DNA of 64,000 nt from Salpingoeca rosetta (taxonomy: Eukaryota; Protista; Choanoflagellata): the NCBI GenBank assembly GCA_033442325.1, contig JAWQFM010000008.1, positions 1,782,287 through 1,846,286 of the forward strand, in the 5' to 3' direction. Both the position numbers and the translations under genes were made by a program. This document shows positions 31,903 to 40,108 of this stretch, in pieces; the stretch's first letter is position 1, and the number at the start of each line of letters is the position of its first letter. Below the pieces are notes generated by a model. That model searched no databases and was not told where the DNA came from. It saw only the letters and a program-made list of their open reading frames with translations.

Positions 31903-34900
31903 TTATGCCGTGTCCTCCTCATTGCTGTTGTCATCCTCGCCATCCTGTTGCAAGATGTCCCGCAGCTTGGTAACCAGCCTAGCAGGAACCAAAGGCAAGC
32001 AGGTAGGAGGGTGTCAATCAAAGCTGGCGAAGGGAGGGGGAGTGTATGGAACGCAGCACAAGCGCGACGGTCGCTGCAACCTGCATACACATGTGCACTT
32101 ACACTTGCACACATGTACACACACACACGCACACACACACACACACATAGTGTACATGTACGTGCACGCACTTGTTTCGGGGGCCTTCAAGGGACGTGTT
32201 GGCCTCAAAGTCTCCCTCAAGAAACTTGAGAAAGGACACGGTGCAGCAAAACACACTCTAACCGGAGGAAATAGAGAGATATGGAGAAGGGTGGGCGTGG
32301 TGGTGTGGGTGCATGTTGTATGTCGTGCTTGTGTGAGTCACAGCATCGTGCAGGCACAGGTTGACAGCTGACAGGCAAATGACAACACAACGTATCCAAA
32401 CGCTCGCACACATACACGCACACACAATCATGAACGTACTCGTTTGTTTGCGAATTCGTAAGGCACAACGGCGTTCTGTTGGCAAGTAATGTACGGAACA
32501 AGCAGCGTTGGGTGCCCACCAAGCGACCTGCAGCCCAAACACGTACAAGAAAGCGCACAGAGTGGAAGCAGAGACATGGAGTCAGGGAAGAGGCTACATA
32601 TGCAGACACACAGATGGGCACAGACACACGCACAGACGACAGACAGACAGACAGACGGACACCCAGAAAACACACACACGCACACACACACACACACACA
32701 CCCACACCCACACCCAGAAAACACACACACACACACATAGAACGCGAGATGACGCACCCGAGGAACCAAAGACGGGCCGAGAGGTCCACGTCGGCACTGG
32801 CGCTAAAGTCCAGCACAACAAGGACAGCGCAGCAGTGCTCGCTCTCAAGCGCATGACGCAACTGCTCCTCGTGGCGCCCGGGGCTTTGGGGTGGGAGCGT
32901 GCATGAGTGCATGAGAGAGCGTGGGTGAGGGACACACGAACACATACATATGTTTGGTGGTGATACGTTATCAAAACGTTGCGCGTGCATGTGTATGTAT
33001 GTGTGTGTATGCATGTGTGTGTGCATGTGCGTGTGCTTTCATCCTGGCGGATACCAGCAGCCATCACGTCACCATCATCACCGCCACGATCACTCACTCG
33101 AGGGCAACGGGGATGTCAAGTTTGCACTGGAGAAATGCCTGCAGCGTCTCGGCAAAGTCACCGCCCATCGGATTGATGATGAGCACGTGGTCGTCTCGCT
33201 CCACCAGCGCGGGTTCCGCAGGCACAATCGTGTCGGGGTCGCACTCCATCTGGACGAGGAAAGGAGGCAGGTCGTGAGAGCAGGCGATGATGGCGTGATT
33301 GTGTGTGTGTGTGTGTGTGTGTGTGTGTGAGTGTGACGACAGTATGAAGGAAAAAAGTGGCTGCAGGCGTTATTGCACCTTGCAGCAGCGACAGCAGAGG
33401 CACCTCTTACATGTGGAAACACACACACATACAACACACACAACACACACATACAACACACACTCACACACACACACTCACACACACACCATGTCGTGGA
33501 TGCGTTGGACAAGGTCTTCAAGGTCTTGCTCGTATGTCGCCGCGTTTTCAAAGTTGAACAGCTGACGCGATGACACGTACTGGCATGGGCGTGGGCATGG
33601 GTGGGGAAGGGGAGAAGGGGAGAAGGGGAGAAGGGGATATCATAATGAGAAATGATGTACCTTGATGGAGCTGCAAACTAACACACACACACACACACAC
33701 ATACACAGACAGACGCAAAATCATACGTCTGGGAGCTGGTCTGGCTCGCCGCGTTGTTCGGGCGAGATGGGCGGGTGGATGCCCAGCCGGTTTTGGTTCA
33801 CTTCAAGCTCGTGCATGCAGAAAGGTGACTGGAGATACGGTTTGGAGAAGAGGAAGATAACGGCGTGGCAGTAGCGCGCCTGCCAGTCCACCGCACGCTC
33901 CCACTCTTCGCCACTGTCATGCGCAAGCGTGTGAGTGAGTGTGAGTGAGGGAGTGAGTGAGGGAGTGAGTTAGTGAGTGAGTGAGTGAGTGAGGTAGTGA
34001 GTGTGAGGGAGTGAGTGAGTGAGTGAGTGAGTGAGTGAGTGAGTGAGTGAGTGAGTGAGTGAGTGAGTGAGTGAGTGTTGTATCAGCGGACAGCCGACAC
34101 AACTCTCGCCATGATGCAAATTGCACATCTGCATCAAGCATCACGAATTGCACCTTGGAATATCGCGGTCCCACCAGACGGAGATACCCTTTGCTTGCAG
34201 ATCACGACACAGTCTGAAGTTGCAGTGAGGAAAGGCAATACAGAAGCGTGAGGAGTTGCGTAGTCCAGCTGGTAGGCACACACACACACACAGACAGGCA
34301 CGCAGACGGACAGACACACAGACAGACAGACACACAGACAGACAGGCACGTATACACACACACACATACAGACACAGACAAGCAGGCAGCATGCAATACG
34401 CGGGCAGCGCAATGCATACTTGTCAGCAAACTCGTCGCACACGCGATGTTTATACGAGAGGAACACTTGTTTCACTCCAGCTGCACGCGTGTGAGAAATT
34501 TTGGCGTGTGAAAGGGGTGGGGGAACCATCGGCAGCCAGCTTCAACGCACGCACACGCACACACACACACACACACACACACACACACACACACACACAC
34601 ACACACACACACACACACACACACAAACGAAATGTGGAAACACAGCCATACAACACAATGTGCTCACCGTGTTGCCGCAACGCGCTCTTAACACTGCGAG
34701 CGTTTGTCGCCACATCTAGCACCGTCTTTCTGTTTGCATCACGCCGTGCAAACTGCTCTGCTAATTGATGCCCGGAAAAGCAACGACTGATTCGATTCAG
34801 CCGTAACACGTTTTCAATGGCCTGGGCCATGGGGGAGCGTGCAGCAAAGTGCAAAAACGTGCTGCACGCATGTGTGTGTGTGTTCGTGTATGTGAGTGGA

Positions 34901-37900: not shown

Positions 37901-40108
37901 ACACACACACACACACACACACACACACACACACACACACACACACACACACACACACACACACACACACACACACACACGCACACGCACCATCGGAGCA
38001 GTGTGGGTGCCTCCCATTCGTTGACGATTAGGACATGTGCACGTGCGACGATCCGGGTGATGACGGCGGGGTCAAAGTTTGCAGAGAGGGGGGACGCCTT
38101 GACCACAATGGTGAGATTGGAACCGCACCGCGCACTCGCTTCCTCCAACGCCTGACGCGGGAGTAATGGCGTGAGATACGATACAGCAACACAGGAGAGA
38201 GGAAACCTTGGGAGGAGGGGGCACACACAGTGCAATGGAAGGCGACTAACTCACACACACGCAAACACACACACACACACAGACACAGACACAGACACAG
38301 ACACAGACACACCTTTGCAACGGCTTCGTGCTGGACTTCGAGTTGAACGAGGAGGACGCGTTTCCTCTTCTCATCACTACTGAGCAGCTCGACCACATTG
38401 TGCACATCCTCATCGTTCACTGCCTCGTTTGCCGCAGCATGCGTCACTGTCACCTTGCCCTGGTATGGCAAGAGAATGTCGGTGCATGAGTGATAAGTGT
38501 GTGAGTGTGAATGTGAGAGTGAGTGTGAGTGTGTGAGAGTGAGAGTGTGTGTGAGAGTGAGAGTGTGTGTGAGAGTGAGAGTGTGTGAGAGTGAGAGTGT
38601 GTGTGAGAGTGAGAGTGTGTGTGAAGTGTGTGAGTGTGAGAGTGTGTGAGTGTGTGAGTGTGTGTGTGAGTGCGTGTGAGTGTGTGTGTGTGTGAGTGCG
38701 TGTGAGAGTGTGTGTGATTGATCGTCACGTCTGTGTACTTGGATATTCATCGTCACGTCTGTGTACTTGGATATTCACGTGGATGTACACGTATGTGCAT
38801 GTGTGCCCGTTCTGACTGACCTGGACTTGTTGGGGATCTGACGAAAGCACATGCAGACGCATCGCCACAGTGAGAAGGAAGGGTGATAGAAGGACAGATC
38901 ACATTTCATGGTCAACACAACCACATCTTCATCTTTCATCACAGACGCAGACACACAGCACAGACGCAACAATACGGATACACATACACGCGCACCTTGT
39001 GGACATGGGAGACGTCGACGTGATTGAGGCGTAGGGAGCGCAGTGCAATGTCGCTGAACTCGTCTTGGCCAACGCGGGCCACCATACTTGTGTTGATACC
39101 GAGGCGAGCAAGCGCAACAGCGGCGTTGGCACCTTTGCCACCAGGCAGCGTCTCAAACACCCTGCACCGCGTGTTGGAGTTCTTCTGCGCTTGTGGTTGC
39201 GCGACAATGGTGGCAGTTGTGAGAAAGTACGTGCACGTGTGTGAGTGAGTGTGTGTGTGTGTGTGTGTGTGTGTGTAAGTGTGTGTGTGTGTGTGTGCAT
39301 TTCACTGTTGTCTGTTAACGCGGCGCACGTATCCAATTGTAGTCAAAGCAAGTGACAAGCGTACAGCGCAATGCGCACCTGTGGCAGTGATGGTAGTTCC
39401 GTGAGGAGATCGATGTTGATGCTTCCAAACACGACGGCGTGCACATCCTGTATTGACACACGATCAACAAGACTGTGGGCAGCGGGATCGGAAGGACAAG
39501 AGGAGGGCACACATCGTCTTCAGACACACACACACACACACACACACACACAGACACACACACACACACACACACACACACACACAGACACACAGACACA
39601 CACACACCGACACACACACAGCCAACCTCGATCGTGGAGAGACTGCCTCGACGAGTGCGCACAGGGCGCGAGTCCTGTCGCTGCAGTGGCAGCAGACTGT
39701 CACCACCTTGCTGCTCTTGCTGTTGTTGCTGTTGTTGTTGTGTCTGGGCAGCATCGTCCCCACCCGTGCGTGGTTGATCCTGCACACCAAGCCCTTGGTC
39801 GGACGCAAGCTTCTCCACCCTTGTCTGCAGCGTATCCAGGCGTGTATTCTGTGCGGCGTGTGTGTGTGAGCGTGTATGTGTGTGCGTGTGAGCGTGTGTG
39901 TACGTGTGTGTGTGTGCGTGTGTGTTCACAACCACATGCGCGCTTCGTTCTTTCTGCAGCACCTCATATACACGCACACACACGCTACTTCAACCCTACT
40001 GACAATCATTTGCCATTTCCTGTCCATCTGTCTTGTTGCGGCTGCAAACATGCTGCGAACAGCAGCAGCAGCACCAGCGTGCCGTTGCTTGCTTGCGTCT
40101 GTCTCCAT
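31903..40108 (-). CDS. Multidomain protein: ribokinase (PfkB) domain - ankyrin repeats - TIR (TIR_2-type) domain - degenerate second TIR-like domain; PfkB/ankyrin junction unresolved
   Basis: PfkB: [55 protein letters not shown]. Ankyrin: [44 protein letters not shown]: [48 protein letters not shown]. Ankyrin-to-TIR exons splice in phase. Confidence 0.75.
37080..37290. repeat. Longest (CA)n tract in the window, at the PfkB/ankyrin junction
   Basis: About 200 bp of nearly pure CA filling almost the whole intron. Confidence 0.95.

Follow-up and report, generated by a model that had tools for sequence, protein, structure and literature searches.

A conserved PfkB-ankyrin-TIR fusion protein of the choanoflagellate Salpingoeca rosetta with a putative NAD+-cleaving TIR domain

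We analyzed a window of 64,000 nucleotides (nt) from Salpingoeca rosetta (contig JAWQFM010000008.1, positions 1,782,287-1,846,286), and coordinates below are positions in this window. The region under study is the S. rosetta gene PTSG_03428 on the minus strand (XP_004996014.1; UniProt F2U562; database label P0001), whose database names are merely 'hypothetical protein' or 'TIR domain-containing protein'. Judged from its sequence, PTSG_03428 is one cytosolic multidomain TIR protein, in which a coiled coil is followed by a ribokinase-like PfkB domain, an ankyrin/ankyrin-like spacer, a TIR_2 domain and a small alpha/beta domain. An earlier note on this DNA had placed the first four of these elements in one gene, and this order was borne out by Pfam searches of the spliced product and by its conservation in two other organisms; the alpha/beta domain was absent from that description. 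The features of the gene are as follows, with the motif-bearing exons taken from the open reading frame (ORF) list and its translation.

31903..40027, minus strand: coding span of PTSG_03428, 22 exons, 3120 nt including the stop, 1039 amino acids (aa), from an exact splice-aware protein-to-window mapping
39627..39848, minus strand: exon 2, N-terminal short coiled-coil-like, Gln-rich segment, aa 9-82; no Pfam family, coiled coil judged by eye
37295..39447, minus strand: exons 3-8, ribokinase-like PfkB domain, aa 86-335; Pfam PfkB 1e-25, 91.1 bits against a cut-off of 25.8
39447-39379, minus strand: exon encoding GSINID
39184-38996, minus strand: exon encoding GGKGAN and VGQD
38460..38995, minus strand: intron 4, the longest (536 nt), at the site where the lid segment of the homologues (TG.A.I.V strand) has no counterpart
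38459-38313, minus strand: exon encoding QLE
38151-37991, minus strand: exon encoding NEWE
37433-37295, minus strand: exon encoding GAAD
37023..37294, minus strand: intron 8, at the PfkB/ankyrin boundary, almost pure (GT)n, at the site where the C-terminal ~70 aa of the homologue PfkB have no counterpart
36360..37022, minus strand: exons 9-10, ankyrin repeats (aa 338-385) and the helical region after them; Pfam Ank, Ank_2, Ank_4 and Ank_5
37022-36920, minus strand: exon encoding an ankyrin repeat
34668..35933, minus strand: exons 11-13, middle region aa 454-731, divergent ankyrin-like repeats and a low-complexity insert; no Pfam match
33490..34480, minus strand: exons 14-17, TIR_2 domain, aa 737-858; Pfam TIR_2 2.4e-18
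34480-34420, minus strand: exon encoding VFLSYKH
34213-34154, minus strand: exon encoding GISVWWD
33913-33727, minus strand: exon encoding GEEW...
33808..33810, minus strand: codon of Glu807 in SPFCMHEL, at the catalytic-Glu position of NAD-cleaving TIRs by alignment to AbTir and SNC1
31903..33249, minus strand: exons 18-22, C-terminal ~170-aa alpha/beta domain, aa 865-1039; no Pfam family

The motifs from which the earlier note had read this architecture were all found on the minus strand in the order it gave, both in the ORF lists and in a three-frame translation, and the codon it had assigned to the Glu of CMHEL was exact. Of the two ends it had set for the gene, 31903 is the annotated stop, whereas 40108 is an in-frame ATG and the annotated start lies at 40027. 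The ankyrin acceptor, which it had placed at 37068, is annotated at 37022. Profile searches had been suggested there as a check, and on the spliced product PfkB, ankyrin and TIR_2 all scored above their Pfam cut-offs. The three families were also detected on single exons (PfkB 3.8e-15 on 39196-38996; Ank 3.2e-06 on 37074-36919; TIR_2 4.8e-05 on 33918-33727). The ankyrin families matched aa 336-385 of the spliced protein, with an Ank score of 22.7 bits as compared with 27.6 bits on the exon and a cut-off of 21.1. In S. rosetta, no Pfam family matches the region that follows (aa 386-736), which contains ankyrin-like LHxAA motifs and aligns with the ankyrin matches of the homologue from Barroeca monosierra described below.

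All introns of PTSG_03428 are GT..AG, and nearly all acceptors are CAG in the splice-aware mapping. Short tandem repeats, (GT)n/(CA)n or related ones, occur in nearly every intron in 31900-40100, among them those at 37098-37294, 37860-37990, 38513-38672 and 34009-34078. Upstream of the annotated ATG, in-frame ATGs lie at 40051 and 40108 (81 nt upstream) with no stop between, and on this reading of the frame the N-terminus could be extended by up to 27 aa. In eight RNA-like S. rosetta runs from two studies, 0.32-0.38 of the sampled words of 33000-39000 were present, while the annotated exons alone predict 0.30. This word content is consistent with an expressed spliced transcript plus a small surplus. 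When one middle exon (aa 454-534) was searched against 1.84 billion representative proteins, the sole true match was PTSG_03428 itself (1039 aa, 8e-43); two further matches in the same search were spurious repeat proteins.

We next considered the full length of the protein, for which the search retrieved two other proteins in which PfkB, ankyrin and TIR_2 are arranged as in PTSG_03428; the earlier note had suggested looking for such proteins. The first, P0004, is a 1063-aa protein of the choanoflagellate B. monosierra (EukProt). The second, P0005, is a 1302-aa protein encoded by an uninterrupted 3.9-kb ORF on a 5,109-nt environmental Logan contig (53-3961, plus strand) from run ERR1719399, which we take to be a Tara Oceans metatranscriptome. 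With its 52-nt leader and 1.1-kb trailer, this contig looks like an mRNA. PTSG_03428, P0004 and P0005 align collinearly along their length at 26-35% identity, and the sugar-binding and catalytic residues of ribokinase as well as the TIR Glu are invariant in all three. The Pfam PfkB scores are 91.1, 100.9 and 122.4 bits, respectively. P0005 has a GC content of 63% (81% at third codon positions, GC3) and a ~400-aa linker between PfkB and ankyrin/TIR. P0004 lacks near aa 805-810 a ~20-aa piece matching S. rosetta exon 15, and its prediction probably skipped a small exon.

These homologues bear on whether the S. rosetta gene model could be an artefact of annotation, in which two head-to-tail genes, one for PfkB and one for ankyrin-TIR, had been joined over the (GT)n tract. 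Intron 8 is indeed almost pure microsatellite, and acceptor 37022 omits a homologue-like stretch: the peptide just upstream of it (QLLSG...VNET) aligns with NLLSGNHKINSCDHEL of B. monosierra. Against a merger, neither a stop nor a start signal lies between the two parts, and an in-frame GT..CAG junction is present. Since two other organisms each have a single protein with this domain order, in one case encoded by an intron-free ORF, we consider such an artefact very improbable.

The PfkB subfamily that best matches all three proteins is ribokinase (NCBIfam TIGR02152), with 111 bits for PTSG_03428 and 121 and 149 bits for the other two, and the nearest solved relatives of the domain are ribokinases. 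The signature motifs of the PfkB family are present and invariant, namely the GG motif as GGKGAN, NxxE as NEWE and GA(G/A)D as GAAD, and in alignments to solved ribokinases the Asp of GAAD falls on that of GAGD/AAGD. In RbsK of E. coli, these motif residues reportedly bind ribose, bind Mg-phosphate and transfer phosphate or act as the catalytic base. The invariant columns among the three homologues are concentrated in GSINxD, GGKGAN, QLE, NExE and GAAD. The retention of these residues at such low overall identity suggests that the domain preserves a ligand or catalytic site and does more than provide a scaffold. The S. rosetta genome contains at least three further PfkB loci (C18:1201233-1201499, C16:491174-491380 and C9:806536-806844), and thus PTSG_03428 need not be the housekeeping ribokinase.

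The TIR domain matched the full Pfam TIR_2 model (PF13676, positions 1-122) on aa 737-858 with 67.2 bits against a cut-off of 28 (2.4e-18). Structure prediction, another check suggested in the earlier note, gave TIR fold matches for this part from a low-confidence model: in the AlphaFold2 (AF2) model built from three sequences, with a predicted local distance difference test (pLDDT) score of 56, residues 7-147 matched TIR/SEFIR structures with Z 10-11.7 and a root-mean-square deviation of 3.1-3.6 over 119-130 aligned residues. The top Foldseek matches were TIRs, including RPP1, SPARTA, TLR1/15, AbTir and SARM1 (E 1e-6 to 1e-4). In pairwise alignments to solved TIR chains, individually weak at E 0.02-0.6, Glu807 of SPFCMHEL fell consistently on the catalytic Glu of AbTir (WTNYELD; 8g83, 7uwg) and of plant SNC1 (WCLNEL; 5h3c), the position proposed in the earlier note. 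C804, E807 and L808 are identical in all three proteins. PADLOC returned weak TIR matches, of which the best was a SAVED-TIR model (1e-09), while the ThsB models were weak (E 1e-4 to 1e-3).

At least 38 exon-level TIR_2 matches were found in the S. rosetta genome, which points to a large TIR repertoire, and the TIR of PTSG_03428 has no close paralogue there. Another S. rosetta TIR, that of F2UB80, makes cyclic ADP-ribose (cADPR) in a Glu-dependent manner (bioRxiv 10.64898/2026.04.20.719644). F2U562 was not found in those tables of the same preprint that were available to us, nor was the PTSG_03428 protein listed in the available part of the supplements of the TIR atlas preprint PMC13142454.

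The C-terminal ~170 aa past the TIR are conserved, being 36% identical to B. monosierra, and have no family in Pfam. Low-confidence models of this domain show a b-a-b-a-b-a-b-a arrangement. Its nearest features in the ESM atlas were bacterial TIR and ThsB clusters (0.87-0.91, values also attained by some shuffled sequences), and its top VIA match was a plant TIR (Z 9.9), tied with generic receiver/flavodoxin-like folds. Foldseek gave generic Rossmann or flavodoxin-like folds at E>1e-3 and nothing specific; hhalign against the gene's own TIR gave 7%, and a profile search of PDB gave an insignificant ankyrin resemblance only. The position equivalent to the catalytic Glu is apparently Gly in S. 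rosetta (LWFLGSL), and B. monosierra has FLELL. From the models and the sequence, the domain would be flavodoxin-like and, at roughly even odds, may be a second, degenerate TIR-like domain.

We propose that PTSG_03428 acts as one multidomain TIR protein in which a ligand-binding PfkB input controls an NAD+-cleaving TIR, an explanation to which we give, taken as a whole, about an even chance. The TIR would be an NAD+-cleaving enzyme that becomes active once TIR domains come together. The ribokinase-like domain would serve as the input module, binding a small molecule that contains ribose and, in the complete homologues, ATP as well, and the dimer-forming PfkB fold together with the coiled coil and the ankyrin spacer would control the self-association of the TIR, in parallel to the ARM domain of SARM1. 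In S. rosetta, where PfkB is truncated as assembled, the domain may be a ligand-binding or dimerizing remnant and not a kinase. We infer the NADase activity, the PfkB ligand and the gating of the TIR by PfkB from the analogy with SARM1.

Several results weigh against this proposal, the first of which concern the PfkB domain itself. The earlier note had called it ribokinase-like, and this holds for the nearest family and for the site motifs; as for the fold, the S. rosetta copy lacks two parts of the domain. The lid segment, which in both homologues contains the TG.A.I.V strand, is absent at intron 4, and everything after GAAD, ~70 aa in P0004, is absent at intron 8. The match to TIGR02152 accordingly covers model positions 2-251 of 298, leaving ~47 positions (252-298) unmatched, while P0004 and P0005 reach 296-297. 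Thus the S. rosetta assembly does not encode a complete PfkB fold with its lid strands and C-terminal nucleotide-binding helices. Neither intron 4 nor intron 8 contains an open AG..GT segment coding for ribokinase-like sequence, and a search of the rest of the S. rosetta genome for the homologue's C-terminal PfkB segment gave no match. Furthermore, the TIGR02152 scores of all three proteins are far below the equivalog cut-off of 299.65, and the proteins do not qualify as ribokinase equivalogs. A real truncation would mean that the helices holding the adenine nucleotide are gone and that the S. rosetta domain is unlikely to be an active kinase; as read from the sequence, this copy may not be a competent kinase.

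Both gaps (37023-37294 and 38460-38995) coincide with introns filled by long microsatellites. They could reflect genuine loss, with acceptor 37022 re-used, or collapse in the assembly of exons located between microsatellite tracts. In the latter case the real S. rosetta PfkB would be complete, its exons having been lost from introns 4 and 8. Besides the position of both absent segments in repeat-filled introns, the QLLSG stretch is suggestive of a collapse, as it resembles the homologue and cannot be joined in frame to the consensus donor of exon 8. The RNA-like runs also exceed the expectation from the annotated exons (0.32-0.38 vs 0.30), but unspliced RNA would explain this excess equally well. 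Moreover, the region contains no N, and no stray genome match to the missing segment was found. Taken together, we regard a collapse as rather unlikely.

The remaining points against the proposal concern the TIR and the underlying data. Most of the tested eukaryotic TIRs carrying the Glu yielded no cADPR isomer in E. coli (bioRxiv 10.64898/2026.04.20.719644), and thus the catalytic Glu does not guarantee activity. Both structure models are of low confidence (pLDDT 55-56). In addition, a protein-collection search with aa 200-480 and aa 730-1039 returned no transcript-derived fragments, a result that is blank rather than negative.

Animal TIR adaptors have classically been taken as non-enzymatic interaction modules, and PTSG_03428 might likewise be a scaffold, in which the TIR performs no NAD+ chemistry and PfkB is a dimerization handle or a tethered ordinary sugar kinase. 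The failure of most tested Glu-bearing TIRs to make a cADPR isomer fits such a scaffold, and so do the truncation of the S. rosetta PfkB and the adaptor-like architectures of ankyrin and TIR that are common in choanoflagellates (PMC6040629). However, the Glu and the neighboring Cys and Leu are invariant in very divergent homologues, and a pure scaffold would have no need of the invariant sugar-binding and catalytic residues of PfkB. We consider this explanation unlikely, to about the same degree as a collapse of the assembly.

The same PfkB residues could instead serve a pair of coupled enzymes. Here an active PfkB kinase would phosphorylate the substrate or product of the TIR on a ribose hydroxyl, or would supply a phosphoribosyl acceptor, giving a modified signal of the ADP-ribose (ADPR) type instead of sensing a metabolite. 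Consecutive enzymes are often fused, NExE and GAAD, the motifs for phosphoryl transfer, do not vary, and P0004 and P0005 have a complete nucleotide-binding C-terminus. On the other hand, the C-terminal helices required to bind ATP are missing from the S. rosetta copy, no TIR pathway with a PfkB kinase is known and our literature searches for one were blank. The probability of such coupling appears low to us.

The ligand of the PfkB domain could also be of the protein's own making. ADPR is a ribose joined at O5 via a diphosphate to adenosine and in this respect resembles a bisubstrate analogue for ribokinase, which acts on ribose and ATP, so that the ribokinase fold would be pre-adapted to hold it. 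The PfkB domain might then be a receptor for, or a modifier of, the ADP-ribose-type product of the adjoining TIR, and the protein a self-contained producer-plus-sensor or producer-plus-kinase. We advance this as a speculation with little chance of being right. To our knowledge, such producer/sensor logic for NAD-derived signals has so far been found only as separate proteins, as in Thoeris ThsB/ThsA and plant TIR/EDS1.

The protein is already in public databases and is uncharacterized there; its PfkB-TIR fusion is genuine as well as conserved, and it is suggestive. Nucleotide signals that contain ribose are made by TIR enzymes in bacteria and plants and, as reported in a preprint of 2026, in many animals and protists (bioRxiv 10.64898/2026.04.20.719644), and the activation of eukaryotic TIRs outside plants and SARM1 is largely obscure. 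By joining a catalytic-type TIR to a domain that ancestrally binds ribose and ATP, the conserved fusion offers a testable candidate for metabolite control or enzymatic coupling. If PfkB did bind ADPR-type molecules, it would represent a new class of receptor for TIR products. S. rosetta is a tractable organism in which to study the fusion, whose function is here predicted from sequence and whose PfkB may be defective in this species. The earlier note had recognized this architecture from no characterized protein; in agreement, our full-text literature searches found no paper on a PfkB/ribokinase-TIR architecture or on PTSG_03428. Richter et al., 2018 (PMC6040629) described combinations of ankyrin with TIR and of protein kinase with TIR in choanoflagellates and did not mention PfkB.

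Compared with the known systems, PTSG_03428 shares with ribokinase RbsK (TIGR02152) the ribose-binding and catalytic residues, that is, the N and D of GSINxD, GGKGAN, QLE, NxxE and the Asp of GA(G/A)D. In contrast to RbsK, it scores far below the equivalog cut-off, its PfkB domain sits inside a 1039-aa signaling-type protein, and the lid strand and C-terminal helices are absent in S. rosetta. The 'Kinase TIRs' of choanoflagellates (Richter et al., 2018) are likewise choanoflagellate-restricted fusions of TIR with a 'kinase', but theirs is the protein kinase Pkinase, whereas PTSG_03428 has no Pkinase match and carries the sugar-kinase fold of PfkB.

Plant TIR-NLRs and TIR-only proteins and bacterial TIRs of the AbTir/ThsB type have in common with PTSG_03428 a TIR_2 domain, the S-x-(W/F)-C-x-x-E-L motif with the catalytic Glu, and the fold, as judged from the matches to the RPP1, RPS4, AbTir and SPARTA TIRs. 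The partners differ: in place of NB-ARC/LRR, SLOG, SIR2 or Argonaute, the S. rosetta protein has PfkB and ankyrin. F2UB80, a Roco-type TIR protein of the same organism, is also multidomain and intracellular and has the catalytic Glu, although both its TIR and its partner domains are others. SARM1, the animal ARM-SAM-SAM-TIR NADase with choanoflagellate homologues, is set apart by its input and its assembly. No ARM or SAM was among the Pfam matches of PTSG_03428 (E<=0.1), which is not a member of the SARM1 family and has a ribokinase fold as the input, and oligomerization would here use the PfkB dimer and the coiled coil instead of the SAM octamer. Nevertheless, both are cytosolic proteins with a catalytic-type TIR toward the C-terminus, helical repeats and an N-terminal regulatory region that binds, or in PTSG_03428 would bind, a small molecule, and by this analogy the logic proposed for PTSG_03428 would be that of SARM1, metabolite-gated cleavage of NAD+.

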